Of a DNA stretch of 64,000 nucleotides, positions 2,139 to 45,922 are shown one piece after another. Position numbers and translations under genes: made by a program. The stretch is from Auanema rhodensis (taxonomy: Eukaryota; Animalia; Nematoda): contig OZ059895.1 in assembly GCA_964057225.1 (NCBI GenBank), positions 6,386,001 to 6,450,000 on the forward strand, read 5' to 3'. The notes beneath the pieces are model-generated. The model had not been told where the DNA came from, did no database searches, and worked only from the letters and a program-made list of their open reading frames with translations. Position 1 is the first letter of the stretch. Each line of letters starts with the position of its first letter.

Positions 2139-2143
<5 letters not shown>

Positions 2144-2178
<35 letters not shown>

Positions 2179-2198
2179 GTAGATATATATATATATAT
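2144..2198. repeat. (TA)n microsatellite, interrupted
   Basis: Seen directly in sequence; boundaries approximate. Confidence 0.9.
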
Positions 2199-5100: not shown

Positions 5101-6283
5101 CAGAAAAACAATGACGATTTTTAGCTCTATTGCTTTCATCTATTACAGACTAGATAAAAAAAATAGCAAATAGCCATTTGTAGATCGAAATGCACAATCT
5201 TTTAAAGTTAGGATAAACATGCATCTTTCAAATTAAGCTCATTTAAGCTTAAACCCTTATGTTGATTGTGCTAGTAGTTGAAGCTAAATTTAAACGAAGT
5301 GGCGAATAGACAGACATATAGTAGATAGGAAAACAGAAAAAATTTATATTTTGCAAAGTAGCAAATAGTAAAAAACACAGACGTCATATCATAAACTATT
5401 GAAAATGATCCTTTTTCTTTTTTTTTTTGGACGCATTTCATCCATTTCAGACCATCATCATATCTCAACAGGCCGTTTATAGAGAGCTTCATAGAGCTTG
5501 CAAGTTGCACCCCCCTAAACCTCAAAATTCATTCAAACGAAAACGTCTGATATCAGCATCGTTGGGAGCAGCCGAAAAGAAGAGGAAAGAGCAGCAGCGG
5601 CACCTCGCTGCTTTTCTTTTCAAAACCACACGATGTTGAGGACTCATTCACGAAATTAAATTATAGAAATAAGGCTTAAGAGCCAGTCATTCTAAAGTAG
5701 ATTTCGGAAGAAATATATATATATATATATAGCTAGTCAGATACATAAATGGAGAATGGATAAGATATGCTTTGCTTGAGGCATTATTTTCTATTTCTTT
5801 CACAATTACCAATCATGGTTGGATTTTATTCAACTTAACAACTGGGTCAGACAAGAATCAGAGGAGACTCTAGATTTGTAGAGAAGAAGAGTCCAAACGG
5901 TTAGAATTTAGTAAAAGGTAATCAAAACAAATTGCAGTTTTCCAAAACTTCAGCAAAAGTTATATGCCAACCCATTAAATGAAATCAGAGGGAACAAATG
6001 TTTTTGGTTCGGAAAATATCTATACGTGTAGTAATAACGAACGAAGATAAAATCACCAGTAACATATTGCCAAGTACATGCTACAACTAGATAGAAGATT
6101 CTCAAAACATTCAATAACATTTTTCGTTTTTTAAGTCTTAAATATAAGAAAAAATCACAAAAAAAGTAATAAAACAAATCATAGAAATATAAACAGGAAA
6201 TAAGAATAATAGTAGTGTGAATATTATAAATAAATAAATTTAAAAAAAAACTAAATTAAAAAGTTGTATTAAAAGGAACGCAC

Positions 6284-7307
6284 CGTTTGTTTTCATGGAG
6301 ATAATCTGCAGCCACTCCTTGACTGTCTGTCGTGAGCGTGGAAGTTCTTCATCGAATGCAAATGATGGTGTGTTGATAGACCATTCTTTTTTGAAGAACG
6401 GACTTTTTTCAGTGAAATAGTTCTTGATAGCATATAGAGTAAAGTAGCAGTGAGAACTGACATCATCTGAATCCGCTGTTTCTTCTTGAGCTGGACGATT
6501 TACGGCTCGCTTCTTGTCATGATACATGAATAACATATGCTTGAAATCAAGTGATGTCTTCATCGTACCATTCGTCGTTCGGTTAGCATTCAGATCTCCA
6601 TGATAGGCGATCAATTGAAAGGTGCTGTCGGCCATTTGGCGATAGCTTCCTTGCATACGCGTGAGGAACGTATAAGCCTTTTTTGAATGTAATGACGATG
6701 GCATACCAGCAGTTGTTAGTACCGGTATTCCACCGTTCAAGCCAGCACTCACTTTTGTCACGGTGGCAAGGCCGTAACTGTCAGCAAATCCTAGAATAGC
6801 ATCTAGACGATGCTCACAGTAAGCCTGAATAACACCGACGGCAGAGTGGCGTTCAGCCAGTGTTGTATCTTCCCAGTAACGAGAATCATGATAAGTTAGA
6901 TTAATCCATCCAGGTGGCATACGACTACTATACTCAATATCTTTTACAGCTATATCAATTACTGGCCGTGCTTTTTCTATAGTTAGGCCAAACTTGTCAT
7001 TGTGCGATTCTTTGGCGGGAAGTACGACCAATACATTATAGGGTAGTTTGTGCCCACGGGCTTCAAACTTCTCACGAATGTATTCATCTTGTTCTTGAAG
7101 TAATTGAGCTTGAGCCGATTGAGTCTGGAGCAATAAAAAGATGATAACTGCGACTAACCACCAATGCTGCTTGGATAACAGCTTAAATGATGAAGAAGTG
7201 GATGATTCTCGTGCTAATGAGCAACATGGTCTAGTCAATAAGTTGAAACATCGACGTATCCGACAAAACGATGATGTGTTTGGCAATCGGAGGAGCTGGC
7301 ATGACAT
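6284..7307 (-). CDS. gcy-28: Receptor guanylyl cyclase (ANF/natriuretic peptide receptor family): intronless alternative first coding exon encoding the signal peptide and N-terminal part of the extracellular ligand-binding domain (partial gene)
   Basis: ORF 7307->6240 has a hydrophobic signal segment (WWLVAVIIFLLLQTQSAQA). It is followed by ANF-receptor-type motifs (YNVLVVLP, PVIDIAV, INLTYHDS, LDAILG, GIPVLTT, FLTRMQGSY, SHCYFTLYAI, FAFDE). Protein-like sequence stops at the donor AAACG|GTGCGT (last exon base 6284, phase 1; 1024 nt); the remaining ORF tail is intron read-through. It closely matches my recollection of a C. elegans GCY-28 isoform N-terminus. The symbol is from memory, not a search. 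Confidence 0.88.
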
Positions 7308-7932
7308 GGCCTCCTCATAGGGACATTAATCATGCATCAAGTAGGAGGTATATACGTATAGTCGGACCGTCTTGCAAAGGAAGAGATTGAAGCGAGAGAA
7401 ATTCACGCCGTGGCACGAGGTAATCTCCAAAAAAAAAAATAAAAGAAACGTAAACATATATTCAAGATAGATATAATTTGCACAAAAAAAAATAAAGAAA
7501 AGACTAATGAGTAGAACTAGAAGATAATACAATGTAAAAGAGATAATACATGAAAATGAGTAAAATGAAGTAAAAAACAAGATGAAAGACTAAAATAACT
7601 ATTAATTCGTGAAGGGAACAGTTACAAGAATGAACAAAGTAAACAATAGAAAAGGAAACAAGCTTCATAACAGTGCTCTACCAAACATAGATTGAAATGC
7701 ACAAGAGTCTGTCAGATTTTAATAAAAAAGAAAAACAAAAAAGAAGGAACTAATGGCAAGGAGAATCAGAAGAAGAAAATTATGAACGTTAAATTGATGG
7801 CAATTCTGACAGCCTATCTGTATGTATGTGAGTACATCAATTGATTGTTTTGTGTATAATTTAAAACTACAAACCACACCCACACGTCCATATACACACA
7901 TAGATATATAGAAATAGAAGAAAGAAAGAAAG

Positions 7933-7933
<1 letters not shown>

Positions 7934-8010
<77 letters not shown>
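7934..8010. repeat. (GA)n microsatellite
   Basis: Seen directly, about 75 nt; source of the spurious poly-SL ORFs. Confidence 0.95.
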
Positions 8011-8014
<4 letters not shown>

Positions 8015-11000
8015 TAATGCATTGATATATCGACAGATTTTTTTCTGATTCTGATCAAAAAGTAAAACAAAAAAACTCTTGTTGTTTTCGCTGATATTAT
8101 TCGAAAACGACAGCTTTGATATATACATATATATTAGCAAACACATGCCTAAATAAAGTTGAATAATGGTTAAGTTCTATGAAATAACAACTAAATAACT
8201 AGATAGTCTGACTGATATAGTAAAAAGTTAAAAAAAAGAAAAAGAAAATATCTATACTATTATCTGAGTGATATTGTCTATAAACTTGATTAAGACATTA
8301 ATAATCTTCAAATCAGGAGAATCACTTTGAAGAGGATATTTCACTCTTTTCCTTTTTAGATATTGCTTTTTCTTTCTCTATTTCATTTATTTAATGTGGA
8401 AACGAATGAAGAGATTGAGAGCAAAACATTGGACAAGCTGGTAAACGGAAGAAAAGTGCTTAAAGTGAAATAAAGAGTCTGAATAGCAAGTTTCGAAGAA
8501 AAAGTGATTAAAACTTTGCTTGTAAAGACATAGATAGACTTGTAAGGAAAAATAGAAAGTGTGATGAACTGTAGATAATGAGATTGAGAGAGAAAGTGGA
8601 AAGAGACTAAGAACCAAAATAAAAAAAGAAATATACGGAAGAGAGATGTGAATGTTTGACAGAGTAGTATTAAGAACCAGAGAAAGAGAGAAAAGTTTAA
8701 GAGAGAAGAGGCTATAGGGGGCGGAGCTACATATTCTTTGAAACACTGATGATTTAAGAAGAAAAACTTTTGAACAACCATGACGCGCTGATCATAATGA
8801 CGACGATAGAATGATATTTGAATGCAATGATCCTCATTTGTTCTTTCCCTCTCTCATTCTCTCTTCATCGTGAGAGGGTGGGATGAAAGAGGGTGGAGAA
8901 ACATCTACCCTCAGACAGAGCGGACTGCCCGGGCCCCGACGACACAACAACACAAAGACTCTGGGCTGTATGTATGTCTGCCTGGTGACACCCCCATCGG
9001 CCACTGCTGGTCCCTGTATCTCTCGGCACTAACGTCCCTGTCTAGCCTGGGCAAGTCCTTCTGCCCCACCATAAGTCTATCTCTCTCCCTCTCTATCTCT
9101 TTATCTCTATTTCTCTTCTTTTGACTATCTGTATTTCTCTATCTTATTTCTTGTTCTCTTTTCTCTACACACCCATGAAACAGCAACTAAACAGCAGTAG
9201 CAAGCACAGCCTTGGGGTTTGGCTCCGGCTTTGCAATGGTTGGATAGGATGGGCTGAGCGGGGCTAAGATTGTCCTCACCCCTAGCTCTGGCCCAACCCG
9301 GAGGCGGAGGCATGCGGAGTGCTAAAGACAGGAAGTAATGATGAAGAACGGAGGAAGGAAAAGAAAAAAGATGAGAGACTGGAAGAATGAACGGAATATA
9401 GAGAAGAGAAAGGGAGAGAGAAAGGAAGAGATAGCTAGATAGAGATAGAGCAGGCTGGAAGTTAACCGACTTTAAATAGCTAAGACGGCAGAGACGTAGA
9501 GATGGAAAGTTGAATAAATCATACGTATAGGTTGGTAGAATGGCAGAACAGCCAAACAGTAGATAAAACGAAGAGAATATATTTCATATTATGAAAAAAT
9601 GCATAATGTTGTTAGGAACAGAACAGAAGGATGGTCTGCATTGCAGCCACCCACCCATCATCAGAGCGCTTTCCTCCAACACCATCACCCTACGTGTTTC
9701 CATCAATCTTTCTCTCTCCATCAAAAAAAATACGATCTATAGTACATCGTGATATGTAAACAAGCGCTTATTTCATTTATAATCAAAGAATATTGAAAAA
9801 ATATAAAAATCCTTAGGTTACAACATCAAGATATTCTGATAATTTCTTTTGAAAAAAAAGAAACTGTGACTATCCGACAGTTGGATGATGGGTGATGATA
9901 AGTAGGCGAGGAATGATATGATAGGTTAGCAGTGCAGGACGGACGCAAGATGACAACGACAACGACAGAGATGATGATGATGATGAAGATGACAGGATTG
10001 CTTGCACGAGGTTTCAGACTGAGAAGACTGTCGTCACCGTCGTAAGTAGAAAGATGATACTCTGGTCTTAGTCTTCAATTGATAATCTTTTGTAAAATCG
10101 AAGAGAAAAAAATGAAAAAAAAAGTACGAAGAACGGTCGTTAGAATGTTTTGACTGGATATGTTGCTGAAGCTGATGCGAATGATACTATTGCCATCGTT
10201 GTTGTCATTGCCGTCATCATCATCATGATATGCCACGATTGAGGGCACTTTCGACAACAATTTAATCATCAATGAAGGACAAATATATTTAACTACAAGT
10301 TATAACTAGAATAACAACTTGTGGTTCTTCGAACCGGTGGTTCTCGTTGTTAGTCTGTTCCACCGACGGCTTGTCTGTCCGTGTCAGTGGTTTAAGCACC
10401 CATCTTCATCACCACTACCACCCTCTCGCCACATTTCGTTCTATATAGAGAGGTCTTATCATCATCACGTGTATCACTTCGGTCGGAGCGAAAAAGCAAA
10501 AAAGCGATAAACATGAAGAGAGGTGGTGGAGGTGATGTTGGTAGTAAACTGTGGGCCGGATGTCTGTTCCAAATTCATACCACATCAGATGGAAAAGAAG
10601 GCTTGATTGAATACCTGACGTATTTAATGAGCAGTCTGGCAAAGGGAGGGTCAACTAACAATGACTAGGACATATAGTGCAAAAATCAAAAAATATATTG
10701 ATGCTTATGGTTCGCGAAAGAATAACAATTTTCGTGAAATGAATATGTGTCCTTAAAATCGAGAAATAACAGAAAAAGTACTGAAGGGCATTAGATTGAG
10801 AACCGGAGGGTTATTCGTCAGTGAATAGAATATAGAGAGAGATAGTGATAGAAAGAAAAAGAAAAAAATGAGATAGAGAGAGGTTGTGAGGAAGGCAATA
10901 AGGGGGTGGAGGTGGGAAGAGGTAGAGCAGGTTTGAAAGCTGTCGGAAAGCTTAAAGGTTAAAATAGCGTAGGGTGACTTGTGGAAGGTTGGGTAGGCAA

Positions 11001-12437
11001 TAAAATCTGAATGAAGAATACGACTCGAAGGACATTATATATAAACTATATAATTATATCTAAATAAAGATAACAGAGCAAAAGCGAATAAAAGAGAGGT
11101 AGGGGAAAGAGAGAGAGAGAGATAGAGAGAGAGGGAGAAGAGGATAGGGTATTGTTGAGGGTGCAGGGTTGAAAGAAGAAGGATTAAGAGAATGCCAGAG
11201 CACAGACAATTCAGAAGATTAAGTTGAAGATAGCGAATATTATTGACAACGAAGATGTCGTGGACATTGAAAAAAAACGGAGAGACAATCAAAGCAAAGA
11301 AGAAAAATGGAAAACCAAACATGAGCGAGAAAATGATTAACTCAAGCACAAGCTAGGGAACAAGCCATCTTGGAGCCTCAGAACGTTCACAAGCAATAGT
11401 CTATATCTAACTAAGATATAAGAGTTCGATAAGACAAATATATAAGAATAAAAAACAGAGATGCATAACTCAAATATATGAAGATGTTGTTGTAGAACTT
11501 GATTACATCTTGATTTTGTCATCATACAACTACAATACACAATGTTGTACTATTTCAAAAACATTTTTTATATAACTGACAATTTAATAAAATCAATATT
11601 TTCTTAATCTTCTATCTACAATACTTTAAGTAATGAACAGATATATGAATCAAAGAAATTAGCTGAATCAGCTTATACAGATTAGTGTTTTGCTGGACAT
11701 TTTCCAAGCTTATGAATTAGTTAGAACAATTTTCACTTATAATTGAGAATGCGTCAACAGCATCAAATGCTCTCATCACGCGTATTGAAGTAAGTATATG
11801 AATAAAAGAAGAGTAATCTCAAAAAGAGATACGAAGATGCCTTAGAGATAAACATTACTAGCAACAGTTGAAACTTAAGTTAAAGGGACGACATTCATCA
11901 AGTCGATCGTCCAGCATGCAGAGTTTGAATTCTGTTTTCTCTATTCTTGAGTTTCTGCTTTATGTCCGGCCAAGTAATGTCCATTTCCGAAGTTTGCAAG
12001 CCTTTCCTGTCAAGCAGGTTAGAAGTGCCAAGGCAAGTGGGCTGATTCTCGGTCGCCGTCAGGCCGTCTAGCCGTTTCGCTCTTTTACGTTTTCTCATCC
12101 TAACAAACAACTTTTGGAAAAATGATGTTGCGGCTGATTGATACAAAAGATTTTTCAATTTTTAACAAATAAAGGTGAGAACAGAACAAAATGTTTTGAG
12201 TTTATTAAGAAATAGAAGAGTGGGATAGTTAGTGCTGAAAAATATCAAACTTTCATTATGATAAAAATGAACGAATGCAAGATAGAATCTTGGATTTTGC
12301 AGCAAAAAAAGTTTATTAACTATTTTTAATGGCGGAAAAAGAAAAAAAACATATGAATGTATGCTGTTAGAATGAACAAATGGATATTTGACTTTATAAC
12401 ACAGAAACAACATTGAAAAACTTTTGATACGTATACT

Positions 12438-12438
<1 letters not shown>

Positions 12439-12500
<62 letters not shown>
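12439..12500. repeat. (TC)n microsatellite
   Basis: Seen directly; opposite orientation to most tracts in the window. Confidence 0.95.
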
Positions 12501-12504
<4 letters not shown>

Positions 12505-15228
12505 ACCTTTTTCGCTCTCTCTTTCTCACACATAGAAAGATGAGGCAGGGAAGGTGCAAAGATAAAAGATATCGACATATAAAAGACAGGACGAAAGAGA
12601 AAAAGAAGAAAACAAATGAACAATTAAAACTGGAAAAGCCCGCAGAATTTCAAAGATATGAAAATTCGATAAAGTTTCAGGTGTATATAAAAGGTCGGCA
12701 AAGCGGACACAACTGGCTCAACTCTATTCAACTTTTCTATAAAGAGCAAGAACGAATAAAAACGCCTTTCTACCTAGACAAGATATGTTAGTGACAACCG
12801 GGACGTTGGTTGTAAAAGCAAAAAGCTTATCCAGTTTCAGCTGTCAGTGAAGCCTATTTCGGACATACTTGCAAACTTAAGGCTTCCAACTTTGTTATCC
12901 GTAATCATCTGCATATTATTCGATTTGTAGAAGTTTTTCTGTTTGGACAGGATTGCTTAGACAATTGAGAAGAGAAAAATGGCACAACGGAAACGCTGAG
13001 AGCAGAAAGATGTCCGTTTCGATTCAACAATGCTGATCGGCACGAAATGGAAGAAATCATTGCAAAGCCCATCCTGAAATCCACAAACTATGCATCATGT
13101 GCCAGAGAAATAGTAAAACTTGTGGACAAGATAGAAATGGAAAAAACAAATAAATGAGTCACTTCATTGTTTATACTTGTTTTTCAAACATTATCTTTGA
13201 ATTAGTATAAGTGTATATGCAATTTCATCAATGGGAATGATGCAAGTAAAGCTCGGGCAATGCGGTAATGTTGAAAAATTGTGGAAAAGTCTGGAGCTCA
13301 TAAAGGAACACACTGCATCTATTCGACATTTCTTATTCTTTTTACACCATCGGCTTTTTTTTATCTCGCCTGCTCAATCGTTTGTGATTACTCTTACTTA
13401 CTTATTCAATGGCTTTCACTAATTTTGCCGTTAATATCAGAATGATCATAATGATGCTAGCATAATGATTGAAATTGAAATATAATCAGTCTCATTGGCC
13501 ATTTTTCTAATATCAAAAGTCAATATAATCAAAAAGATAAAATAGTCTACCCACAAAACAAAAGACTTTTTTTCTATTCTTCTTATAATATCTTGTAAAG
13601 TGACTAGAGTATCAATAGAATTAGAGATAAAACAAAATGAATGAAACAGAGATAAGTGCGCATAAAAATGCTAAAAAAAAACTTTTAATTGTACAAAACA
13701 GAAAAAAAAACATTTTATATCACAAGTGCTGAGCTATTTCACAATTTGGAATAGCGTGATACAGAAAACACCAATTGCAGTATGTGATCATATATGGCTA
13801 AGAAATAAAGAGAGGGAAAATGAAAACAATGCTGAGATAAACATAATGAATGATAGCCTCGTATTCTATTCCAGCATTTCTATTCATCTTTTACTATTAT
13901 TTCGGATATAGAAGTCCTACTGAGTGATTGAAATGGAGAGCTGGAATGGAGAGAGAAAAGAACCCTGACTTGAGGTAAAGGAACAACAAGTACGTACATT
14001 GAGGACACATGATCAACAGAACTATTTCTCTACTTCTTTGCTTTCATTTTCTTTCTCTATCCCGCTCTCTCTCAATTTTTCTCTTTAGTTCTGTTGTAGT
14101 TTTCACATTTGTCACTCTCGATTTTCTGTTTCTCTCACTGTATAATCCAGAAAGAAGTAATAGCTATTGAAAGATCTTGAAAAACGACACTATGATCATT
14201 TGAGACAAGTAACAAGCTTGTATAAACAGTGTAAAAAGCATGATCAACTTCAAAATCTTTTCAATTTGAATTAAGAAATGTCAACCATATTTTTCCGCTT
14301 TCACTTGCATTCTTCGCATTTTCACTGTTGTGCTATACTTTCAACACCTACGAAGCAGATTGATTAAGTCGTTGGAGGAATATGAAGCCTTTGAATGAAT
14401 ATGAATAGACGGCTGTCGCTCCCAATAAGCTCGCTAAAATTCTCGCTTCCGAAAAACGAAGTATTTTATAAAAACAGAACATATTGACCGTCATTCTATA
14501 TTTAACTCAATAAAGTTGATAATATAGCATTGTGGGTTGAAGACAAGCTTATTCAAATTTTTAGTAGTATAAGAATTTTAGAGGAAAATGAGAGTGAGAT
14601 ATATAAAGAGAAATAAAGGATAAACATACGACGTAAAGGAATAAAGCTAAAACTGTTCTGAACAGACTAAATATGGCTTATGCATGTATTTTCTGTTTTT
14701 GCTCTGTCAACTATAAAGATGCAAGGCAGGCAAGCATGTAAGCATAGGCTCTTCTTATATCCATATTATACTTACCCCCATCCTCTTCTTTAATAGAGAA
14801 AAAATAACGAAAAGTATATAAGGGAAGATGAAAAAAATATATAAAAGGCAGAAAATCCAGCTTAATCATTATATTCAAAAAATAGTAATCATATTGGCGG
14901 TTGACGGCAGCGGTAGTTGCCTTATGAGAAGAGAACACGAAAGGGAAAGAGACACGAAGATAGAAGAGGAACGAAAGAGAGAAAAGAAAGTAGGAATCTT
15001 TTTAGAGCCCATGGTATATGAAAGCAAGATTATGATTCATTTGAAAACAACACACACACACATACATACGCATACACACACACACACAGGACAATCCACA
15101 GGTGTTCTCATCAAGACAGAAATTATTTGCTAACCAGCCAACAAGTTCTGCTTACACCGCTCGCAGCCTTCATGCTTCTAACCCATAAACGAACGCAAAA
15201 AAAAAGAGGGAAAAGGATGGATGGATAG

Positions 15229-15290
15229 AGAGAGAGAGAGAGGGAGAGAGAGAGAGAGAGAGGGAGAGAGAGAGGGAGAGAGGGAGAGAA
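15229..15290. repeat. (GA)n / GGGAGA microsatellite
   Basis: Seen directly in sequence. Confidence 0.9.
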
Positions 15291-18200
15291 AGAAGGGGAT
15301 ATACAACAGCCAGTCACAACATGAGAAAATAGCGAGAGCAATCAGTGGAAAAGCCTGTGTCAAACAAGTGTCTCTGCTTCCACCTGTGGGCATTCAGGTC
15401 CAAATTACTAGTCATAATAACAACTTCTTTCTGGGTACCAAATGAAAAATGGATTTCAACTGCAACAAACTCAACGTTAAGGATACGTAGAATCATTGTA
15501 CACCACGATACACAAATCATGTAATGTATAGTAAAAAGAAATGACGTTGATCAATCTTATGAAACAGAAGACAAAAAAAAAGAAAAGAGGAGTTTGAATC
15601 ATTTATTATTGGTATAATGACATATCCTTAAACTATATGATGATGTTAAGATTTATATTTATTCTATTGATATAAATCCTAAAATATATATTTTTTTGAA
15701 TGGTCATTACTTTCTATATTGGTTGAAAAGAAAAATTCTGAATAAATGCTATCTTTAGCATGGAATGAGATTGGCAAATAGATGTATTAGCAGTTCGAGA
15801 GAAATTGCAATTTCTGTGCTTGGCGGAAAATTATGTAAATTAGCTTGGCGAAGTTTGAACCTATAAAATTGGGAATAGAAGATAGAGAAAAACGAAAAAA
15901 AGAGAGAAATAGATAGAAGATGGTATGAAACTGAAAAGTCAAAAATCGTTTAGTTAGAAAATAATAATCATCATCATCAGCGTCAGTCATCTATTGTACA
16001 TAAACAAACGTGAATTAAGGCAACAATATATCTATTTACTATATCATATATATCATATATATATATATATACATATAGTAATTCAAAACATTAATATTTA
16101 CAGCACATATGAATAGTTTCAAAATATGAAAAGATGAAAAAAGAAAAAGATCAAGCTTTTTCTTGCACTGACAAGCACGGATATATTACCTTCACTGCTG
16201 CAGACTTCAGAAAAATGTAGTTAAAGAGGAAGAAACAAGGAAGGTTAGGAGGAAGAAAGAAAAGGAGAGAGAAGGAAAAACAAGGAGTAATATAGGGAGA
16301 GAGAGAACAGGAACAGAACCGCAACATAGAAATCTGATAGTTTGAGAAGTTGCAGAGATATGCAGAAAAAGCAGGTAATGATAGTCAAACAATTGAAAAA
16401 AAATAGAAACGAAAAGGAAATTTTAAAAAATAAGAAAAGAATTATTATGAGATTTCTCGTTTCAGTTGAAAAATGATGAAAAAAAAAGCCAAAAAAGAAC
16501 TGGAATATAAATAATACATTCAAGTCATTTGTACTTTTTAGGAAGAGGAAGATGAAGATAAGAGAGTAAGTAAAATCATACGCAGAAATGAGGTAGAAAA
16601 AAGAGAAAAATAAAAATGATGAATGAGATAGAGAAAAAAGATGAAAAGAGCAAAGAAGTATTAATAGCCTCGAAATCTCGACCACGTCCTCTACTTCTCT
16701 CTCTCTCCCCCCCCTTTCTCTCTCTCTCCTGTTTTTATTCATATTTCGTTATCCTGCAACTCTCTCATCGTAGTGACGTGCAGATTCATTAGGGATCGAT
16801 GAGATTTCAAAACGTTTAAATAAAACTTGCAATGTGTTTGTGTGTTTCGCAGTTGAAATTGGAATTAAAAGGCAATAAAGCTTCCTGAATTTTGGATCAA
16901 GCATTGAAGTTTTTTTAACACCTTAGCACCATACATAAATTCATTTAAACGTGCATTTCTCTCAGAATCAAAAAATAAAATTCCTGTTCATAATTTTAAA
17001 GTATTTCAAGTTTCAATTATTCATTCTTGTCCCAGTTCTTTCATTTTTCGACTCGCCAGGCTTCAAAAGAAAAATTTGCCAAAAGCTGAGACATATTGTT
17101 CTTCCATACTCGTCCTCCGTTCTCATCTATCGTCTCCTTTTTCTTCTTCCGGTCTTTTCCAAACTTGCAACTGCGAGAATCATGATAACAATATATATTG
17201 TGTCATGAAATTAGAAAGTCAACGAGAGGACGTGAAACCGGAGTAAATGTACTTGGAATATTGTACTAACAATGTTGAATCATGGGCTAATATTAATGAG
17301 ATCACTGCATGAAGGAGTTCTAAAATCGTTATTACTGAATATGACTGACCCAAAACCACATAAGATGCTTGACTGGTTAAATACAAGAAAATGGTCGTCA
17401 AATTTGGTAATAATAACCCTCAAGGTAATAATAGGTCTTCATTTGCTCTTATTGAACTCAAAGCCAGGATAGCTTAGAAGCAAAAACTACATTATGGACG
17501 TTATGAACACCTAATCAGATTGCGACAGAGCAAAAAAGAAATTTAATGGAAGAAATGCTGTAATTTCCGTTTTGTTCAAGAAAATTCGAAAAGTTTCACC
17601 ACGAAATAAGAAAGGCAATTCAAAATAATATAATTCGTTGATAATAAAACGAAAAACTGTGAGTCTCAAACGAAAATTTCAGAGTGTATTGCTTCTCATC
17701 ACGTGAAGCAAGTGGAAAAATTATCGTGTTTGTGGTATAGTATAGGTCAATCGTCAAGCTGATTTTTGTTTATATGTAAGAGTCAGGAAAATGATGGCTT
17801 GCTCAAGCTACTACCTCTCTCATGTTGACGAGACACATGATCTCAATCCAATGCGGTCATTATGATGAATACTTCGAAGAAAAAAAAAGGATTAGGATAA
17901 ATTGATTTAACGAAAAGAATTGAAATTAAAAGAATAATGGAACAAGAAAATGTAAAAGCTGTTGACAAGGATAAGCACAATTAATAAAATAAATAATTTT
18001 ATTGATTACATATTAATATGGGCCAAAACAAGCTTATATTTAAGAAAAATATGTGTATATATATAGATAGATATAGATATACATGACCACCAACAGCAAA
18101 TGGGGGATTGCTCTGAATATTATACGGAATAAGTCATGAGTGTTATCAGTTGACAAGCTCAATGATGGCAACTACAAAGCTTGGACAGCTCATTTATCGG

Positions 18201-21200
18201 AAAATTTGGGAGAGTAGAAGGGGATATATAGAGCGGGAAATTATGAAAGCCAATGAGATATAAAGAGAATGCAGGAGAATTGTAGATACAACATTTAAGA
18301 TTAGGAAACACTCCTCCAAGTTATTATTTCTAATACATGACGACGTGAAAGAGCACATTCGAATAAAAAAATTGTAAAAAAGGTGCTACATATCCGAAAA
18401 TGAATATATTGAAAAGCAAGTGAGTCGAGGCAAACAGAAAGTATGATTAAATATATAGAAACTGTATATCTCAATTCGGTATTTTTCCTCAATTGAGACT
18501 TTGGAAAAAAATTGTTCAAGTTATGATTCTGTTGTTAACATCTCGCCCTTTGAATAAAATCATAACATCTTGTGGCAAAAGCCATGAAAACATCCTGTTG
18601 AGAAGATGCCTGAATAGCTTTATTCAATCTACTGATCAAGCTAATCAACTACGCACAAGGTTTCTCGAATTAAGGAACACAAAAAGCAACGAGTATACAA
18701 ATACTAATGAGATGTCAAAAGAAACAAGTAGATTTGACTTGCACACACAGAAAGAATATGAATAAATCTCTGAGTAAAACGAGGGGTAAACCATGAAGGT
18801 CTCGTCTTTAGTTATCGTTTTTTTCTTGCTAGTAGCCAAAAGTTGTTCTGTTGGGGTTAACAAACAAATAAGAATAGTGAAATGAGGTTAAGAGGGAAAG
18901 TGAAGAACGGGAAATGAGCTGTCAATTGAAACATGAAAACGTTTACTGCTATTACTTTAAGGTTGCCTACGGCAACATACAATTTTGCGATCGAAATCTC
19001 GATTATGCAAGAAAAAGATGGTGATAGCATGAAATATATTGAAATATATTCATATGCACATATACGTGATCAATTTTCAGAACTCTTTGACGTAAAGTAA
19101 AATGAAGAAAGAAAGAAATAAGTGAAATGAAAACTGAACGTATACAATGACAACCAATGAAGGTTGGAAGGCGGCATTACGCACGTGTAGATGAGGTTGT
19201 CCTGAGAAATCTCGTTGACAACCAGGTATGGAATTGAAACAAGAGAGAAAGCATAACATGCCGAGAGAGAAATATTGGACAATGAAAATGAACTATATAT
19301 TCTAGAGCTCAAAAAAGCAAAAACAAAGGAAGAAAAAATGAAAAAATAGGCAAATACTCGTGTATTTCTCATTTATCCCATATTTTTGTGCTCTCTCATC
19401 CTCGCACGGCCTCTTGCAGTACACACTGAATATCCAGTTCGTTTTTTTTTCGTTTTTCTTTCCGAAAGAGAAGGTGAAAAGAGAGTCACAAATGAAATTC
19501 AGCTCAAAAGCTCAAATATGGATTTGATACTATAATTGACTGCAGTTTTTTTTTCTTTTTGTTAATATCAAACTAATGAATCCAGAACATTAAAATTCAT
19601 TCTTTACGATAAAGAGACCCATAGATATACTATGAGTATATCATAAAGAAAACAGAAAGAGAACAAATACATTTAATGATGGTAAGAAAATCGAAAACAA
19701 AAAATGTTATGAATAGTAAGGAGAAATAGAAATAAAATAAGACTTAGAGAATAAAGCAAACGAGCATCTTTTACAAGCATTTGTGAGCTTCGTAAGCCAA
19801 AATGAACAGATAAGGCTAGTATGGCTCTGTCGTGGCAGGAAGAGATAGATGGAGGAAACGAGACAGATACATGAAGCAGGTCTTGGCTCGAAAAACAGCC
19901 TGCCGGTCACAGCATGTCGGTCGGTTATGCCAGCAAGAGAAGTATTGTTAGCATTCATTTTAGAATAGAAAACGGCAGTCGATTCTTTTTTTTCCAAAAC
20001 GAGGGTTTAGCAAAAGAAGAAAACAAGAGAAATCTAGCGAGTTAAAGATTTTCCTCTATTAGCTTTACTTTCACATTAGAATCTTACAAACAATCAAAAA
20101 TCTCAACAGTTTATGAAGATACAAAGACAAGAGCAGAAAATGGAAGTGAATTCAATCAGTGCTCATGGTCAATGGCCCGACAAACAGAGCACACCAGAGA
20201 ATGCTGCAATTCAAGAAATTGAAATAGCTCATTGGAACATTCAGAAAAATTCCGGATGAAAGATTGGAATTCCATTTCTATAGATATAATGATTAAGACC
20301 AAGCGAAAAAGGGCTAATGAGAAAGAACTGCGCAAATCAGCACCGCTAATCAACGATATCATGAGAATTCATAGAAAATGGATATATTTAAAATAATATA
20401 ACAGATAGAACATAAAGAAGAATCAATTTTATAGAGAATAGAAATGAAAAGGGATAAAACCGATGAGAATAAGCCAAGAGCAGTGAGAAAAAGATTTAGA
20501 GAAAAAAAAAGAAATTTGAGAAAACGATAAAAATAAATTTTGTCTGTTAAGGAAGAAGGCTTTATTTATGAAACCAAAGCCGAATCTTGAACTATCATCA
20601 CCCTAACTTCCTTACGAGCAACATGTGGGCTTTTTTCTTCTTTAATTCATTTTTCTTCTAACTTCTATACTGCTATTTATCTAATTGAGGGGACGTCATG
20701 AACGCTACGGCATGAATGAAGCCTTAAGCAAGCATGAAACGATGATACAGAATTGATTCATTTGTCTTTCATCAAGAAAAATCGTTAGTTAGCTCATATT
20801 ACGAATTAATTTTGTATGTGATTCGATTTATTGACTTATAAAGATTTCTTAAACTATTCTGCAATCGTAACTAATCAAACGAGAAGCTTAGCGCGTATCG
20901 GCTACCGATGTACTTTCATACTTTTGTTTTTGAAGCAACTTCATCTGACTTCTCTTCATTACTAGTTGTTCAATAGTAGAACGATCCGGAACTGAGCTTC
21001 ACTCTCTCATCATCATTTTCGTACTTTTAATTACCAGTCATCATGGTTCACATACTAGATGATTCTGTTTACATTTCCTCCAATAGCTGTAGATTGTCGG
21101 AAATTAAAGACTATATTGTTTTCCTTGGAGAATAGCTAACTTGACTGCAATTTGAAACATGCATCCTCATATATATCTATCTATCTATATATACATATTT

Positions 21201-22677
21201 TTTTCTTCCTCTAGTTTTTCGTATTATTTGATAAGTAACAGATAAGCATTAAATCAAACTAACAGAACAGTAGGAAGATAGAAGACTGACAAAAAAACTG
21301 ATGAAAAAATAAAACAAATAAACTATAAGAAAAAGATGGGAAAGATGAAAATATAAAATGGCAATAGTAATAGATCGTAATAGTAGTCTATACTGCACTT
21401 TTAATAATATTTTCACAATAAAAAAAGTAAATGATCATATAAGGAAGAAGTAGAAGAAGATGACATATATGAAACTAAATATATAAATAAATTCCCTATG
21501 TACTCAGAAGTTTGTGATAATTAGTGTTGTCAACAGCTAAGCATTACTAAAAGCAGAATTAAAAGTACAGGAGCGCAATTCGATTCGTTATATTCTATGA
21601 GAAATTAATATAGATCTATTTTAACAAAAATTGAGTAAAAAACTTAATTATAGCTAATTTTAAGTTGGAGAAAAAGAGAAAAATTTTTATATTGAAATGC
21701 TCCTTCAATTACTTTCTCATTAGATTTGGCGTCAGCAATCGAATATATTTATATAGAATTATGCCTATGTACGCTTTTCAATGTTAAAAATTAAGGAAAA
21801 CTATGCACGGGGGAATATTTCTCATTTTCGCAATAAATCAATTTTGTATTTATATTTATTTTCCTAAATACAAAACAAATTTTTATATAACAATTCAATT
21901 TGTTCAAAAAGCTAGCTGGCTAACGTCATAAGAAAAAAACAGTTCATTACATTGAAATCAATGCAAATGAAGAACGAACCAAAGTAATGGGTTATAAATG
22001 TAACTGAAACATGACCACGTATACATAGAAAAATGAATAATTTTTAGCTTTTTCTATTTTTATTATATATATATATATATATATATATTTAGGTGAATAA
22101 TATTTCGCATAACTACGAGATAAATCAATTGGTTAAGACAGAAAGAAATATGATGACGTTCGATATGTGCAATCGTCAAAAGCCTATACTTGGTTCAGAA
22201 ATACATGCTCAGATCAATCACAAGTAAAATACAACATTGAGAAAATGGAAAGAGATGGAAAAAGAGAAAAAGAAAAAAGAAATTTGAAGATTAACATATG
22301 CAAATGTACAGATGAGACTAGGATGTAAATACATATCCCACACATTTCAATATATATATTAATACATTGGGGTATAGAATATAAGAGAAAAAAATGAAAG
22401 TTCGTGAAAACTAATGCAATAAGTAGAGAAAAAAAGAAATATATTTTAGCCGGATGAAGTAGCAGCAAAACGGATTTGGAGCTTTTCTTAGATCTCGACG
22501 AATTTTCTAAAAAGGCTAAGAGTGAGCTCACGGACTTTATATATGTGTACGTATGTATGACTGCAAAGATGAGGGGGAATAAGGATGTGGCAAAGATTGA
22601 GTGTGAGAGAGGCCCAGAAGTGAGGAAAGACTGGAAGATGAGGGTGGAGTAGATGTAGAGAACTTTGAGAGAGGAAA

Positions 22678-22708
<31 letters not shown>

Positions 22709-25700
22709 GCGGTATAGATATTTGAATGAAAGCATATGAGGTAGATGCATGGTTAGATGTTTATTTTATATTTTCATTCCCGCTCGTATACAGCTGATGA
22801 TGACATAAGAAGACAAGTGACACGAGATAACCAGGAGAAAGCGACTATATTAGCTGAGAACAAAACTAAGAAGCTAAAACTAGAGTTGGAAAAAAAGATT
22901 TCATGATGACACAAGGAAGAAATGTGAGACAGCAAGCAAGAATGATAGAGACAAACAGAACTGAGTTGGGAGTTGAGAGAGAGAGAGAAATTTTGTCTGA
23001 GTATGTTATCGATAGCTAAATCTCATAATAAATGTAAAGAAGTGTTAATGTCAGTTAGAATCATAGGGCATAGCTCGTGCTCACTTTAGCAAGACAACTC
23101 TTAGTTTTATGAATAACAAGAGTGTAGTGAATTCGTAGAATATTACTTTGAATACACCTGACATACATCGCTGTCATAGATGTTCCAGGCTACAGATATG
23201 CAATGTAGAGCCTCACAAATGATAATCAGTGCAAGCTACGGATGATTTGCGAAAAAAGGGTATACGAGATGTGTTATAGGATAGGAACGATGTTAACAAC
23301 ATGAACAGCAGAAAGTTTGATGACTGCAACATGAAATCGCCCAAACTCGCCGGCGACAGAAGTATGAACGAGAAAGAAGGAGAATAAGAACGGAAGGCTA
23401 GGTAGGAAGCGAAAGATATGAGCAGACAGACAGCAAAGCATAGAGACGGATATACAAAGAGGGAAGCGGAAAAGAGAAAATGACATAAATTTTTCTTGTT
23501 TAATCCATTCAATTTTATGGCACAAAAAGTTTCCAAGCCTGTGCCAGAATGACAAATGGCAAAACTCAATGATGAAAATAGCGACCTAGCAAACAATTGG
23601 AATTTGTTAGTTTCAAGTAATCGACCATCTGATGTACAAACATTTGTTGAAATTTAGTCAGTATTCGAGACTTTTCTTGTTAATAAACTTAGATGCTCAC
23701 TAGAAATAAAATATATAAAGAGATGGAAATGGGACATAGAGAAGAAGGAAGAGAAAAAAGATGAAGAGAAGGAGGAGGCAGGCAATGTTGCTAGAGCAAA
23801 CGAGTAAGATATGACCAGGTTTGCTCTCCTGGTTTGTTACACTATTTCATTTTGTTCAGATAGTCTGGCCAAACTCTAGTTCACTTTTAATCCTACTTGA
23901 TCTCTTGAAGTCAGCTTGCTCTCTGAATTACATCTTGATTTTTCTCCTAAAAAAGGCGACGTTTGGTCGCGAAGTTGGAAGAAGATATGCAGTAGTGACT
24001 CTCGCAGAACCAGAGTTTAGAGAAGGGAAGTGAGAACAGACACGATATGCTTAAACTCCATTGAACTGAGAAGACTGAGAAGAATGAAAAGAGAAAAGGA
24101 GATGGAGACAAAAAGAAAATGAGAGAAATGGATCCTTATTTGGATCATTGGAATTAAAAAGCCGACGAAACACAATGATACAAAAGCTGAATTTGGCGGA
24201 CGAAATATGAAAACTAAAATAGAAAATCTGAGAAAATCATAGAGAGCTAGATAAATACAAATTAATGGAAACAGAAAAATGTATTATAATATATGCATGA
24301 ATATTTACTTGATGTTGGTCATCACATATGGTCATTATGTGAAGGACTAGTGAACCAAAATAATTTCAAAACACAGAATAGGTAATTGCATAGAATGTGA
24401 GAAATAGTTAAAGCTCAAAAAGAAAATCAAAAATTCACGGATAAAATTGAATGAAATAAACAAGAAAAATTAAGGAACAAAAAAAATGACCGTTTTTTTA
24501 AAGAGCCATAGCTTCAACTATTATGCATTTCAGATATTAAATAAATGATTAAAAACAAAGAACAAAGACAAATATCAAGAGAAAAAGGTGAAAATTTCCT
24601 GATTCAGAAGTCGACTGTCTTGCTTTCATCAATTGTCTCAATCATCCCGCTTGGCATATGACCCGCATCCTATACTTTGACTCAAAAGAGATATGACGGC
24701 ATTATACGGCCCCCAAGCGGAAGCAGTTCGCTTAAAATGATTATTGGCCTCGTTCGAAAGAGAAAAGAACTTGACGAAAATGAAAAATAATCAAAATATT
24801 TGCTTAACATCATCTATTTCATTATTTCATTCCTTGTTTCTGTTTCCATTATCTTCTCGCTCTATCCAGTTCATTTCCTGATTCTTCTTGCATTAACCGG
24901 GTATAGAGATGCTGCAGCACACCCATAGTAGGATCTATGTGAGCAGGGGCCATAACGATAATTAGAAATTGAGAAGCTGAATAGCTAGGTCCACATCACG
25001 AAAGGAGAAAAAGATATTCCGGTGGTAACCGAAAGCAGTAGCAGCTTAGCACTACTGTTCGCCCTCGTTTCTCATTCTCCATCGTATCTTCAGTACTTGT
25101 ACCAAAAGAGAAGAACTTCGCCATATATAAAAAATGGCAAAAATAGCGAAAGCGAAGAAATGAATAGAAGTCAAGAAAACTTCAGTATACTAAGCAAATG
25201 TGTCCGCTCTCCTTGATGAAAATGAGAAGAGGGCAGACAGACGAAAACGTATATTGAATTGAAATGAAATGAACGTAACGAAAGTCAGTTAAAATAGGAG
25301 TAGACGTTAGGCAACAACTTGGAACAGCCAAAGGGTTTGAGAACTAGGAGTATGCGACTACTGGCTAGCAGAATGATGGGGCTTCAAATAGAAGGCGGAG
25401 CGGAGACGAATAGGAAGGATGGATATGGGCTGCCAATGTACGCCACAAAACACACACATATATTTTTTTTCTCGAGCATAGTTATAGTTATAAAGATTAA
25501 GCATGATTTATTGGTTGTTTTACTGTTTCCAATGAATGCCATGTTTGAACTGACGCTGTCGATTGTAGAAAACATAACTCATTAAGATGATAGTAAGGGA
25601 AAATGGATTATTGAGGATGATAAGAAAGGAGAAAAAACTTGAGAGGGGTTAAACAATATCAAAGACAGCCAACATATTATTGTTCTAGGCGACCCGAATT

Positions 25701-26562
25701 GAATAACGTCCGCAGGCAATTTGCAGAATTATAGGAAGGAAAACAAAAAACCGAAAATGAGAGATAGAGATACGAAATATTGAAGAAAAAATGAGCCAAA
25801 CTAGTGCGTATAGCCATAGCATGTGAAGTGAATAGAATTGGAAGAAGCAGCTTGTTCAGAGGTCAACCGTAGCAATAACGCAAATAACTGCAACACAGAA
25901 ATAGCAGCAAAAGAAAGACTAAGTATTTGGGAAAAAAAAGTAACATTTACTTAACAATATCAAAGTGAATTTCATTCGAATTATCCTCAATTAAATCTTA
26001 TCATGTGAGAAAGTGATCATCTCCACTTAGTTAGATCATGTTGCAAAGCACATACGTTTTCAATTATCGGTTATATAGCTTAGTATATGAGATATTCACT
26101 ATAAAGCTATTTATAGATAATATTAATCTATATATAGTATTCTATATATGCATTCATAATATGTGATAGATTTATAAGAAAAGTAGTAGAGAAAAAATAG
26201 GAGAGTCCAACATCGAAACGAGAGTATCTGGTCTACATATAAACAAACAACAATTGAAAGTCAGAGAGAAAAACAGAGTAATTGCTTGTTAAATAATTAT
26301 TTAAAGCAATAGTTAATTATATTATATTTTGTTTTAATGAAGTCCACTAGGAGATCAACTCCCACATTTGATTTTTGTCAAGTTGGAAAATTTTCTTATT
26401 CATTATAACAAGCCCACGTAAAATCAATTGAAATAAGTCCAATACAATTATACCCTTTTGTATGAATTAGGTATTTAAATATTAGTTTTGTTTTTTTTGA
26501 TTAGAATTAAGTATCAAAATGTGATTAGACTACATTTTAGAATAATTCAAAAAGTAGCGCAC

Positions 26563-28391
26563 CGTTTCCTATGAAAGAGCTTTTCATTAGTTTATTCTTG
26601 AACATTGTCCGATTATTTCCTTCTAAATGTTCGTTGAAAGTGAAAAAATTGTGTTCAGTTTGCATTCTCTGAAAAAAGAACAATACATAATTAGTTTGTC
26701 ACAATTACTACTAAAACGAATACGATAATAATCTATATGACAAAGCATATGTTTACTTTTTTAGGGGTTGCAAAAAAGTATCGAAGACAAAAATGCTTAA
26801 AGTGAAGACTTTGACATAGTCAAAACTGCTTATATGAATAAGTTCATATATATATATATATACTTATATATATACTATACTTATATACATAGTATATATA
26901 AATATAGTCGACAACTTTGTTACAAAATTGATACTTTAAGAAGCATTGCTCTAGATTAGAATACATTTTTATGACCAAAAAACAAGAGTAAGCAGACTTT
27001 AGATATTAAAAATGCGTTTGGTGGTTAGAAAATGTCTCATAAATAGGCGAAATAACCTTCATTCTAAATACTCCAGGGAAAAAGTAAACCGTAAAGATTT
27101 TTCCACAAAAAAAATTGAAAGTTAACTAACGTTCTTAAGTTTAAGTTGAATAGATGCCATTAATAAAAAACATTCTCCAACAGGATTTGAAGGCTCTTTT
27201 ATATGATGAAACAGATATACATGTTTCTTCCATTGAAGTGTATCAAATAGTTTCACAACAACAGACACCACAACCTGCAATTTGATTTTAAAATTTTAAA
27301 TTAACATTCAAACAGAGAATTTTTAAAAAATTAAATTAATAAACCTTATACGGACTACTAATCCGTGTTAATAGCTGATATTCCTTTTTATCATCTAGAT
27401 TCATTGTTAAACCAATAGGTGTAATGACAGGAATTCCCTATAATTTATGTATATATGAATATTGAAATATAATTCAACATAACATCATAAATAACCAATA
27501 ATATTATATTTAAAAACTTATAATATGTATAAATAGCAAACATATCTAATGAACTTACATAACTATCACTGTCTGTCCATGTTGGTGTCATTCTAGCGAC
27601 AGGAGCCAAAGCATATACGAAAGCATAACCGATTATACAATCCAATTCATTCTAGAACAGAAATATGGTAAATCACAAACAATTAAATAATGATACATAC
27701 TTTTACTAACTGAGATATGGCAACATTAGGTCCATGAGCATCTGAGAGCTTTGAATTTTTAAAAGTTGCAGCTATAGAGGAGTCCGGGATATACATGAAA
27801 TAAATATAAATAAGAATATTGTAATATATAATATCATAATTCAAAACAATTTTTGAAAACTTTTAAACTAATATAAACTAACTGAAAATTAAATTAAAAT
27901 CGAGCTTATTGTACAACCGATCAAACAAACAGCACAATTAAAATTAAGAAAATTAAAGTGCCACGTGTAAATTTTATATTACATATGCTAATTACTGACG
28001 TTTGTACTATCGTATACTAATGAAAATATTTAATCGCTCAGCTTATAATATTATATAAAACAATCAAAATTAATAAAATTATTGTTAATACGAATATTAA
28101 ATTAAAAAAACATACTGGGCTTTATAAGCATCTTCGAGAGCTAAATTAACGACTGGCACAACCTTGTCGATAGACAACCGGAACGGATTTTTACCATTGC
28201 TCTCATCATCACTTTCGGGAAGTGGAAATAGTATATGAATAGGCGTTAAAACAGATATCTGTAAATATATAATTAGTATTAAATAAAATAATCACTGTAT
28301 TAAAATATTTTCATAAAAGTATTACTCCTTTATACTCCTTAACTTCCGCCACCAGAAATAAGGCCGAAGCGACCAAGAAGGTACGGTACAT
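26563..28391 (-). CDS. gcy-28: Receptor guanylyl cyclase: second alternative N-terminal module (7 exons), signal peptide plus N-terminal part of the ANF-receptor ligand-binding domain (partial gene)
   Basis: Exons (minus): 28391-28326, 28258-28116, 27794-27701, 27651-27559, 27437-27345, 27274-27131, 26668-26563; 739 nt, with consistent phases. Translation: MYRTFLVASALFLVAEVKEYKG/ISVLTPIHILFPLPE...VVPVVNLALEDAYKAQ/YIPDSSIAATFKNSKLSDAHGPNVAISQLVK/NELDCIIGYAFVYALAPVARM.../GIPVITPIGL...LLTRISSPYK/...GECFLLMASIQ.../RMQTEHNFFTFNE...IGN. All introns are GT-AG except the acceptor at 27795-27796 (AT). It ends in the phase-1 donor AACG|GTGCG. Confidence 0.87.
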
Positions 28392-32800: not shown

Positions 32801-34224
32801 GAACTAATGAAGAATAAGAAGAAGAGTTAGTTGTGTTGGAAACTTGAGTACAAATCGAACGGATTTGATTGCAAAATTCAAAAAAAAAAGAAGACAAACA
32901 AGTGAGGGAAGACGGCCTAAACCAGTACGTTTGATAGTCAAAGCTATTATTCTTTATTCGTTTTCATATTGATTTCAAATCATGATGAGATAAATGAAAA
33001 AAAACGAATGTTAATGAAAAGAGCAAAACATACTAGAAAATTAGAAATCAGATATTAGAAAATCCCGATGATCACGCCATCAGTTTTCAACAATCTGCTC
33101 GTTTTCTTGATAACCTTTGCCCTTTTCTGCTTTTCCTCCGTTAGCGACATCTCCCTATTTCTTCACTCATTCGTAAGATCTTGTCAAGATGCTTCCGTTT
33201 TCAGGATCTTTTTTCTTTTTCCAATTAACAATCAAATCATGATGAGATATCTGTTTTATCGGCTTGTTCTTACAAAGGTTATCTTTACTTTTCATCTCAC
33301 TTACTAATTCACATGATTCTAATGAAAACAGCTGTTATAGCATGTGATTTATAAGCGTCTTTGAAAGGAAAATATTTTAATTTAACAAGGATGACAACAG
33401 TAAGTAACTGCTGCATACAACCGAATCATGCAAGATTTTTCTTTAAAATGAAATATGTACATTCATGTAGAACAATGAGATCATCAAACTAGAAAAGTTC
33501 ATAATATATGATAAGTTAAAGAAATTTATAATTTTTATATGAAAATTGAAAATAATTTGATTGAAACAAGGACGAAAAATGATTTGATTAAAACGGAAGC
33601 GGAACTTAAACATGAGGACAAGCGCTTACGACATGTTATAGATACATAGCATGCAGTTATACATGTCAGAATCTAATCCACTACAAAGTTCAATGTAATA
33701 ATTAGAAAATATTAGAAAGGATTAAAGAAAAAAAAAGAAAAATAATAATGAATTATACATATATACATATACATATAGTTTATTATATCTAACTATATAC
33801 ATATACATATATATATATATATATATATTTATATGTTAGTGTATAATGACAATTAAATGAATAGTTATAGAATATATTGGAATGCCAACCGATTAGTTTA
33901 GTCAGTATGTATTGAAAAGATAAGAAAAAATAAGAGGAAATAGTAGAATATTTTCTTGAGAACGGAAAAAGAAAAAAATTGCAAAACAATGAATTAAACA
34001 GGTAGTGAAGGAAAAAAATATAAAATGATATGGTGGATGTATTGAAAACTAAATTTTGAAAGAAACACAGTATCGCTTATGCTAGCAAAATTCAAATCAA
34101 ATGACGAATATAAAGGTTAAAAAAGGATTTTAAAAGATAAACACAACACTAACTACATGCATATGTGTATGTATGTGAGTAATATCATATAAGTAAACTT
34201 AAAAAAATATAATAATAGAGCGAG

Positions 34225-34227
<3 letters not shown>

Positions 34228-34283
<56 letters not shown>

Positions 34284-45866: not shown

Positions 45867-45870
<4 letters not shown>

Positions 45871-45919: not shown

Positions 45920-45922
<3 letters not shown>

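Follow-up and report, generated by a model that had tools for sequence, protein, structure and literature searches.

We examined a 64,000-nt stretch of the Auanema rhodensis genome (hereafter the window; C3:6386001-6450000, within a 181-Mb assembly). The window is AT-rich and contains the 5′ two-thirds of a gene that is, in all likelihood, the orthologue of Caenorhabditis elegans gcy-28, a natriuretic-peptide-receptor-like receptor guanylyl cyclase with three alternative 5′ modules and one shared body. The gene lies on the minus strand and is at least 51 kb long. To the window we added a left flank of 40 kb, giving a 104-kb concatenate; negative window coordinates are positions to the left of the window, and L049-L052 are pieces of that flank. 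A slash within a nucleotide or peptide string marks a splice junction.

Three 5′ modules and one constant body

Three paralogous modules were found, each with its own start codon, a signal peptide, and approximately the first half of the ANF-receptor (periplasmic-binding-protein) fold. They cover Pfam profile positions ~3-171 of 353, equivalent to rat NPR-A residues ~20-190 of 435. M1 and M2 are inside the window and M3 is to its left, and the order along the minus strand is M2 (d-type), M1 (c-type), M3 (a-type), and then the constant body. M2 is made up of seven short exons between an ATG at 28391 and an end at 26563. The features of the locus, in minus-strand order, are as follows.

28344 to 28391, minus strand: M2 exon 1, ATG and signal peptide MYRTFLVASALFLVAE
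28116 to 28258, minus strand: M2 exon 2, ...NPFRLSIDKVVPVVNLALEDAYKAQ; acceptor TTTACAG, donor CA/GTATGT, phase 2; 53% identity to C. elegans isoform d, E 9e-10 (tblastn)
27701 to 27794, minus strand: M2 exon 3, YIPDSSIAATFKNSKLSDAHGPNVAISQLVK; match to C. elegans isoform d at E 5e-5 (tblastn)
27559 to 27651, minus strand: M2 exon 4, NELDCIIGYAFVYALAPVARMTPTWTDSDSY; 61% identity to C. elegans isoform d
27345 to 27437, minus strand: M2 exon 5, GIPVITPIGLTMNLDDKKEYQLLTRISSPYK; 84% identity to C. elegans isoform d
27131 to 27274, minus strand: M2 exon 6, VVVSVVVKLFDTLQWKKHVYLFHHIKEPSNPVGECFLLMASIQLKLKN; 61% identity to C. elegans isoform d
26563 to 26668, minus strand: M2 exon 7, RMQTEHNFFTFNEH...SSFIGN plus G; phase-1 donor AAC G/GTGCGC
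7308 to 26562, minus strand: interval between M2 and M1; intronic for M2-initiated transcripts, with the presumed M1 promoter within it
7307 (ATG) to 6284, minus strand: M1, isoform-c type, single exon; ATG, signal peptide and ANF-receptor N-half, 341 codons plus G
1 to 6283, minus strand: start of the intron downstream of M1, which continues leftwards past the window to M3 and then the constant body
-6560 to -7526 (L052:3440-2474), minus strand: M3, isoform-a type, single exon; donor AAC T/GTAAGC, peptide end ...DASQLTN
-13744 to -13858 (L051; acceptor at L051:6256), minus strand: constant exon 1, TTTTCAG/TG ATC ATA TTA TGT GCT TCA, phase 1

All three modules end at the same alignment column, with a conserved asparagine codon followed by one base (phase 1). 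M1 ends in ...ATG AAA ACA AAC G/GTGCGTTCC, with the GT at 6283-6282 (donor G/GTGCGT, phase 1; peptide ...EWLQIISMKTN), and M2 ends in ...ATA GGA AAC G/GTGCGCTAC (peptide ...KLMKSSFIGN). The donors are AAC G/GT in M1 and M2 and AAC T/GT in M3. The TG at the constant acceptor completes a Val codon (GTG) when M1 or M2 precedes it and a Leu codon (TTG) when M3 does, after which the frame continues with IILCASPDTVREIML..., producing (V or L)IILCASPDT. The introns that separate the modules from the body measure 40.3 kb for M2, 20.0 kb for M1, and 6.2 kb for M3. Upstream of M2, a consensus acceptor, TTACTTACAG, lies 30 nt before the exon 1 ATG and would fit either spliced leader (SL) trans-splicing or an upstream non-coding exon.

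Pairwise identity among the modules is 32-34% over ~230-290 aligned positions. In tblastn comparisons, M1 matched M3 with E 1e-25 and M3 matched the M2 exons at ~2e-6. M3 was found in a Pfam genome scan as a strong N-half ANF match in a 406-codon open frame (C3:6378487-6379038; PF01094, E 3.4e-18, profile positions 3-171 of 353), and it also aligned with residues 20-190 of the rat NPR-A extracellular domain (E 5.5e-9).

The constant body encodes the second half of the ANF fold, a transmembrane segment, a kinase-homology domain, and a cyclase domain, with a stop near window -22620 (L050). In the Pfam genome scan, the ANF C-half appeared on C3 only at 6369915-6372257 (minus strand), where constant exons match PF01094 positions 180-216 and 262-328. 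A hydrophobic stretch, LAAAAGIILLLLIFFFVFWRY, lies at window ~-16500 as the transmembrane segment, and residues 576-909 of C. elegans GCY-28, for the kinase-homology domain, cover window -19830 to -21196 with 49-86% identity (tblastn). The cyclase domain is represented by four exon matches to PF00211 at C3:6363423-6364142 (minus strand, positions 1-183, E 4.6e-17 to 1.5e-6), and the whole-genome PF00211 scan placed cyclase exons on contig C3 only there, left of the window.

We then looked for further copies across the 104 kb. Using 19 constant-exon peptides as tblastn queries, no second copy of the constant exons was found, the best stray match having E 0.19. A hidden Markov model (HMM) of the three modules, run against all stop-free six-frame segments, gave no fourth module in the 104 kb; its only matches were M1, M3, and the six largest of the M2 exons. 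As M2 was included in building this model, the M2 exon matches serve as a consistency check only. Between the modules, the long stop-free segments consist of low-complexity, T/C-rich sequence. Tandem paralogous 5′ units that end in the same phase ahead of a single body fit a variable 5′ module/constant region design. Elsewhere in the genome, ANF and cyclase matches alternate at C4:13471715-13484228 (L010, L012, L007, L029, L023), which suggests two complete receptor cyclase genes in tandem, an ordinary arrangement unlike that of the gcy-28 locus.

A preliminary description of the window had proposed that two diverged signal-peptide and ANF half-domain modules on one strand share a cyclase body. 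Both modules are where it placed them, on the minus strand, and the motif pairs by which it recognized their homology (PVIDIAV/PVVNLAL, LDAILG/LDCIIG, GIPVLTT/GIPVITP, LTRMQGSY/LTRISSPY, and FAFDE/FTFNE) are all present in our alignment. The common protein end position and phase-1 donor that it reported were recovered as the same asparagine column with AAC G/GTGCG. The PF00211 scan and the tblastn searches with constant peptides agree with its statement that no transmembrane, kinase-homology, or cyclase exons lie between the two modules. A separate transmembrane and cyclase set behind each module, which it had named as evidence that would speak against the proposal, was looked for, and one body only was found. 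It had further predicted a phase-1 exon starting V-I-I-L-C-A-S in the left-adjacent DNA; this exon begins at window -13744, in frame with both donors. The shared-body design holds as far as sequence can test it, but the picture of two variable first exons needed revision: there are three modules, M3 having been missed, and M2 is a seven-exon unit.

Correspondence with C. elegans GCY-28 and relatives across nematodes

We compared the modules and body with the C. elegans GCY-28 isoforms, taking isoform names from UniProt and NCBI. Isoform c (P0109, Q86GV3, NP_001021600; 1276 aa), identified as c by exclusion, a, b, and d having labels of their own in UniProt, has an M1-type N-terminus and the junction ...LQSN/VIILCAS. 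Isoform d (P0110; 1238 aa) has an M2-type N-terminus and the junction ...NMAN/VIILCAS. Isoform a (P0243; 1217 aa) falls in the cluster of an M3-type C. briggsae protein, itself 63% identical to M3, and the a-type junction in C. briggsae is ...VMSN/LIILCAS. The V, V, L pattern of the c-, d-, and a-type junctions is the same as that predicted here by the donor bases G, G, and T. From IILCASPDT onward, isoforms a and d are identical over 975 residues, which make up the body, and they differ only in N-terminal parts of 242 and 263 residues, respectively; the body of isoform c is the same except for two small internal splice differences. Each of these three curated isoforms carries exactly one module.

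The preliminary description had noted that C. elegans gcy-28 isoforms differ in their extracellular region, and had called for a comparison of its two modules with them; the three N-termini of isoforms c, d, and a substantiate the first, and the comparison gave 63% identity between M1 and isoform c and 57% between M2 and isoform d. Matched exon by exon, isoform d aligned with M2 at E 5e-5 to 5e-24 (tblastn). When the three isoforms were searched against the 104 kb with tblastn, each variable part matched best on its own module, and all bodies fell on the same exons. As judged from these sequence comparisons, the correspondence is one-to-one: c with M1, d with M2, and a with M3. An assignment to gcy-28 over other nematode gcy genes is indicated on two counts: GCY-28 isoforms and CBR/CRE-GCY-28 are the closest named relatives of every module and of the body alike, and the modules are placed inside three GCY-28 module clades in the tree described below.

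In C. elegans, gcy-28.c and gcy-28.d are treated as distinct isoforms with distinct promoters, the gcy-28.c promoter giving broad expression and the gcy-28.d promoter giving expression in AIA and a few other neurons (PMC9249223, PMC3842693, PMC8816384). In one case, 3.0 kb of gcy-28.d 5′ DNA serves as an AIA driver (PMC8816384).

By analogy, each module of the A. rhodensis gene presumably has its own promoter, and the orthology points to mutually exclusive use of the modules in mature mRNA. Transcription would start at one of three promoters, one per module, and the last donor of the cap-proximal module would be spliced to the acceptor of the first constant exon. Any downstream modules, which begin as first exons, would be removed within that intron. 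The outcome would be three receptors that differ in sensor half and expression pattern and share one signaling body. As the swap point is in the middle of a fold, each variable half would have to pack against the constant half.

To place the modules among nematode proteins, a search with M1 of 1.84 billion representative proteins was performed and returned 102 matches; further full-length relatives, including the C. elegans GCY-28 records, came from a word-index search with a 1070-aa Caenorhabditis sp. 36 protein. By local BLAST, the M1 relatives fall into three groups, with 45-91% identity to their own module versus 25-40% to the other two. M1-type examples come from Gnathostoma, Syphacia, Panagrolaimus, and Caenorhabditis sp. 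36. M2-type examples come from Auanema sp. JU1783 (91%), Ancylostoma, Necator, Haemonchus, Pristionchus, Globodera, Ditylenchus, Panagrolaimus, Mesorhabditis, and Aphelenchoides. M3-type examples come from Anisakis and, at only 40%, Trichinella. The closest database proteins of M2 and M3 are both from Auanema sp. JU1783, with identities of 91% (CAI4224289.1, P0072) and 90%, or 94-95% over trimmed columns, and Caenorhabditis proteins are 56-66% identical to the modules.

A maximum-likelihood tree (quick IQ-TREE, LG+C20) was built from 62 module sequences: M1, M2, and M3, named proteins from nematodes, and five NPR-like outgroup sequences from outside the nematodes. The tree resolved three module clades, the d type with SH-aLRT support of 99, the c type with 100, and the a type with 93/96, and several nematode orders are present in each. 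Nematode clades III, IV, and V are all represented in the c and a clades, and the d clade holds IV and V in the sampled sequences. The single Trichinella sequence falls outside all three module clades (support 92). Long branches make the placement of C. angaria, Strongyloides, Syphacia, and Enterobius less certain. These three clades spanning nematode clades III-V match the expectation in the preliminary description of deep conservation of the gcy-28 system, as opposed to a wholly new one.

The order of the modules also appears to be conserved in other genomes, since in fused gene models of Aphelenchoides besseyi and A. fujianensis an M2-type segment is followed by an M1-type and then an M3-type segment, and M1 precedes M3 in a C. 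tropicalis model. Conservation of order, junction, and phase across distant nematodes argues for three sensor halves with distinct, selected functions. The models P0129 and P0152 (Aphelenchoides), P0157 (C. tropicalis), and P0094 (Pristionchus pacificus) chain two to three modules, or an upstream gene and a module, in open reading frames (ORFs) of 990-1800 aa; these are probably prediction artifacts at the same locus elsewhere.

That gene predictors often split such loci, as the preliminary description had remarked, is evident from the relatives of M1, 93 of the 102 being shorter than 500 aa. The 268-aa Auanema sp. JU1783 protein P0072, of M2 type, ends in ...FIGN GALLFFS by reading through the donor into the intron, like the ORF here. 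Conversely, body-only models of ~970-1020 aa begin at MLAAHELGMATSG, the first methionine inside constant exon 1, in Necator, Toxocara, Plectus, Brugia, Onchocerca, Teladorsagia, and Dictyocaulus. As these body-only models start inside constant exon 1, the split is best understood as a prediction artifact.

A more far-reaching reading of these data is tentative, and we consider it possible but somewhat less than an even bet. Here the locus would be a very old cassette system that swaps half of one ligand-binding domain and that arose once Trichinella-like nematodes had split off but before clades III-V diverged. Over hundreds of millions of years, three sensor halves would have evolved in concert with a single constant half, leading to three receptors with different ligands; in A. 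rhodensis, the d-type (AIA-type) module may in addition be on its way out or be spliced via a non-AG acceptor.

Alternative readings and the d-type splice acceptor

Several observations weigh against the three-module interpretation. M1 alone falls under the Pfam ANF_receptor cut-off, its match to PF01094 being weak (E 7.5e-4, profile positions 3-116, 19.1 bits against a cut-off of 25.4), and its assignment to the fold comes from homology to M3, to GCY-28 isoform c, and to database relatives. Start codons are uncertain for two of the modules. In M1, the sole in-frame ATG is 46 codons before the signal-peptide cleavage region; its open frame reaches far upstream of the signal peptide, and a comparable extension is present in Parascaris. 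In M3, the sole in-frame ATG is ~96 codons before the cleavage region, and a regular-expression search upstream of M3 found no small 5′ exon encoding MMNVK, the start of the Auanema model. We also observed an acceptor-like CTTCAG/TGG in M3 at the place expected for the MMNVK/WFS... junction of the Auanema model, a hint that a small 5′ exon has escaped detection. Promoter use in A. rhodensis, its three long-range junctions, and the mutual exclusivity of the modules are carried over from C. elegans by orthology. Finally, M2 exon 3 has a non-AG acceptor, and in the sequenced strain splicing of the d-type module may be poor or the module may have been disabled recently.

This acceptor was considered further. 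The sole in-frame acceptor of M2 exon 3 is TTATTTCAT/G (27795-27806, minus strand), with TTTCAT instead of AG, apparently a consensus TTTCAG altered by one G-to-T change. The junction residues, AQ/YIPDSS, are identical in Auanema sp. JU1783 P0072. Other splice choices between exons 2 and 3 were tried and rejected: use of the next AG downstream, TATAG/CT, or of AAAAG/TT upstream leads to stop codons, and no phase-1 GT donor is present in exon 2. C. elegans is able to splice at mutated non-AG acceptors, as Aroian et al. reportedly described in 1993. M2 is otherwise intact, and its divergence from Auanema sp. JU1783 is no greater than that of M3. The d-type isoform may therefore be weakened yet not lost.

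Three other explanations of the locus were weighed. M1 and M2 could be independent genes, each encoding a short secreted protein of 250-350 aa with an isolated ANF N-half. Both have their own ATG and signal peptide, the frame continues only a few codons past the donor before a stop, and 93 of the 102 database relatives are annotated as proteins under 500 aa, including the 268-aa Auanema protein CAI4224289.1 and Gnathostoma AB6A40_007844 (346 aa). However, such short models end by reading into the intron, as P0072 does, and the matching body-only models start inside constant exon 1. The GT donor is kept at an identical codon and phase in all three modules across long-diverged species, and it is precisely these N-termini that precede the body in the curated C. 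elegans isoforms. In addition, a periplasmic-binding-protein domain has two lobes, and one half of it is unlikely to fold by itself. Taken together, we regard independent genes as very improbable. The same curated isoforms, each with one module, count against a further possibility, that the modules occur together in one very long mRNA and give a protein with two or three tandem N-halves, comparable to the 1500-1800 aa Aphelenchoides models. Predicted proteins of A. besseyi and A. fujianensis (P0129, P0152) and of C. tropicalis (P0157) do have two to three modules in one ORF, though the simplest account of these fusions is that exons were chained in homology-guided prediction. In A. rhodensis, M1 and M3 begin with their own ATG and signal peptide, a stop at 7326-7328 lies just upstream of the M1 ORF, and M1 and M3 contain few internal acceptor-like sites, most of which do not have the phase that a phase-1 donor requires. 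We give tandem N-halves almost no credence.

It could also be that one or both of the modules in the window are decaying, disused relics of old first-exon duplications, with only M3 making protein here. The missing AG at M2 exon 3, the position of M1 below the Pfam cut-off, and the distances of 20 and 40 kb from M1 and M2 to the body, which make very long introns for a nematode, favor this reading. Against this, the 341 codons of M1 and all seven M2 exons are open, with neither frameshift nor stop, and M2 is not evolving faster than M3, with 91% versus 90% identity to their Auanema sp. JU1783 counterparts. M1 and M2 are also 57-66% identical to their Caenorhabditis orthologues, and the module clades roughly track nematode phylogeny, as expected under long purifying selection. 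Decay of the modules is very improbable on this evidence, and the damage to M2 is at most a very recent splice-site change. The gene with three alternative modules and one shared body is the reading that we retain.

Comparison with known systems and other features of the window

The closest comparison is C. elegans gcy-28 itself (T01A4.1; Q86GV3), which has the same three module types, one per isoform, the same N/(V or L)IILCASPDT junction, and one shared body. The constant exons are 57-92% identical between the two species and the modules 57-63% identical. The A. rhodensis locus differs in belonging to another genus, in being much more spread out (introns of 6, 20, and 40 kb), and in the non-AG acceptor of its d-type exon 3. 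The three-isoform design is already documented for C. elegans gcy-28 and is routine in neurogenetics, and this locus adds another instance. The additions made here are modest: a three-clade, conserved-order, and conserved-phase picture across nematodes, widespread mis-annotation, and the non-AG acceptor.

The preliminary description had likened the locus to UGT1A and the clustered protocadherins. The likeness consists of tandem paralogous 5′ coding units on one strand, with their own start codons and the same end phase, ahead of shared constant exons. Here, however, there are only three units, one of which is split into seven exons, and the swap point is inside a single folded domain; the variable exons of UGT1A and the protocadherins encode complete domains. 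Stochastic promoter choice is, to our knowledge, not reported for gcy-28. The whole protein has the domain order of the vertebrate natriuretic peptide receptors (NPR-A and NPR-C; PDB 1DP4, 1T34, 1JDN), M3 is alignable to rat NPR-A, and the best non-nematode matches are annotated as atrial natriuretic peptide receptor 1. We know of no vertebrate NPR gene that swaps the N-half of its binding domain via alternative first exons.

For annotation, the locus is best modeled as a single gene that spans at least 51 kb and has three isoforms. In Auanema sp. JU1783, the nearest public genome, and in many other nematodes, current models break it into orphan "ligand-binding region" proteins on one side and body-only cyclases on the other. 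A system of a, c, and d isoforms is no peculiarity of Caenorhabditis, as its order, junction, and phase are conserved across distant nematodes. Its conservation sharpens the question of what GCY-28 binds, and the locus is a natural setting in which to study how half of a binding fold can be exchanged.

Outside the gcy-28 exons, an open frame at 55375-55788 (minus strand) encodes a Thr-rich tract followed by a ShK domain (PF01549, E 2e-7) and is probably the next gene upstream of the locus. No RNA genes were found in the window using Rfam. Dozens of (TC)n/(GA)n microsatellites occur in the window and left flank, nearly all with TC on the minus strand (SLSLSL in translation), for example at 7870-8050, 12430-12500, 34190-34480, and 45770-45950. 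The interval between M2 and M1 is likewise T/C-rich on the minus strand, with many (TC)n tracts. Accompanying these tracts, a plus-strand skew of A>T and G>C is sustained from ~4 kb to 55 kb, and the minus strand is hence T/C-rich.

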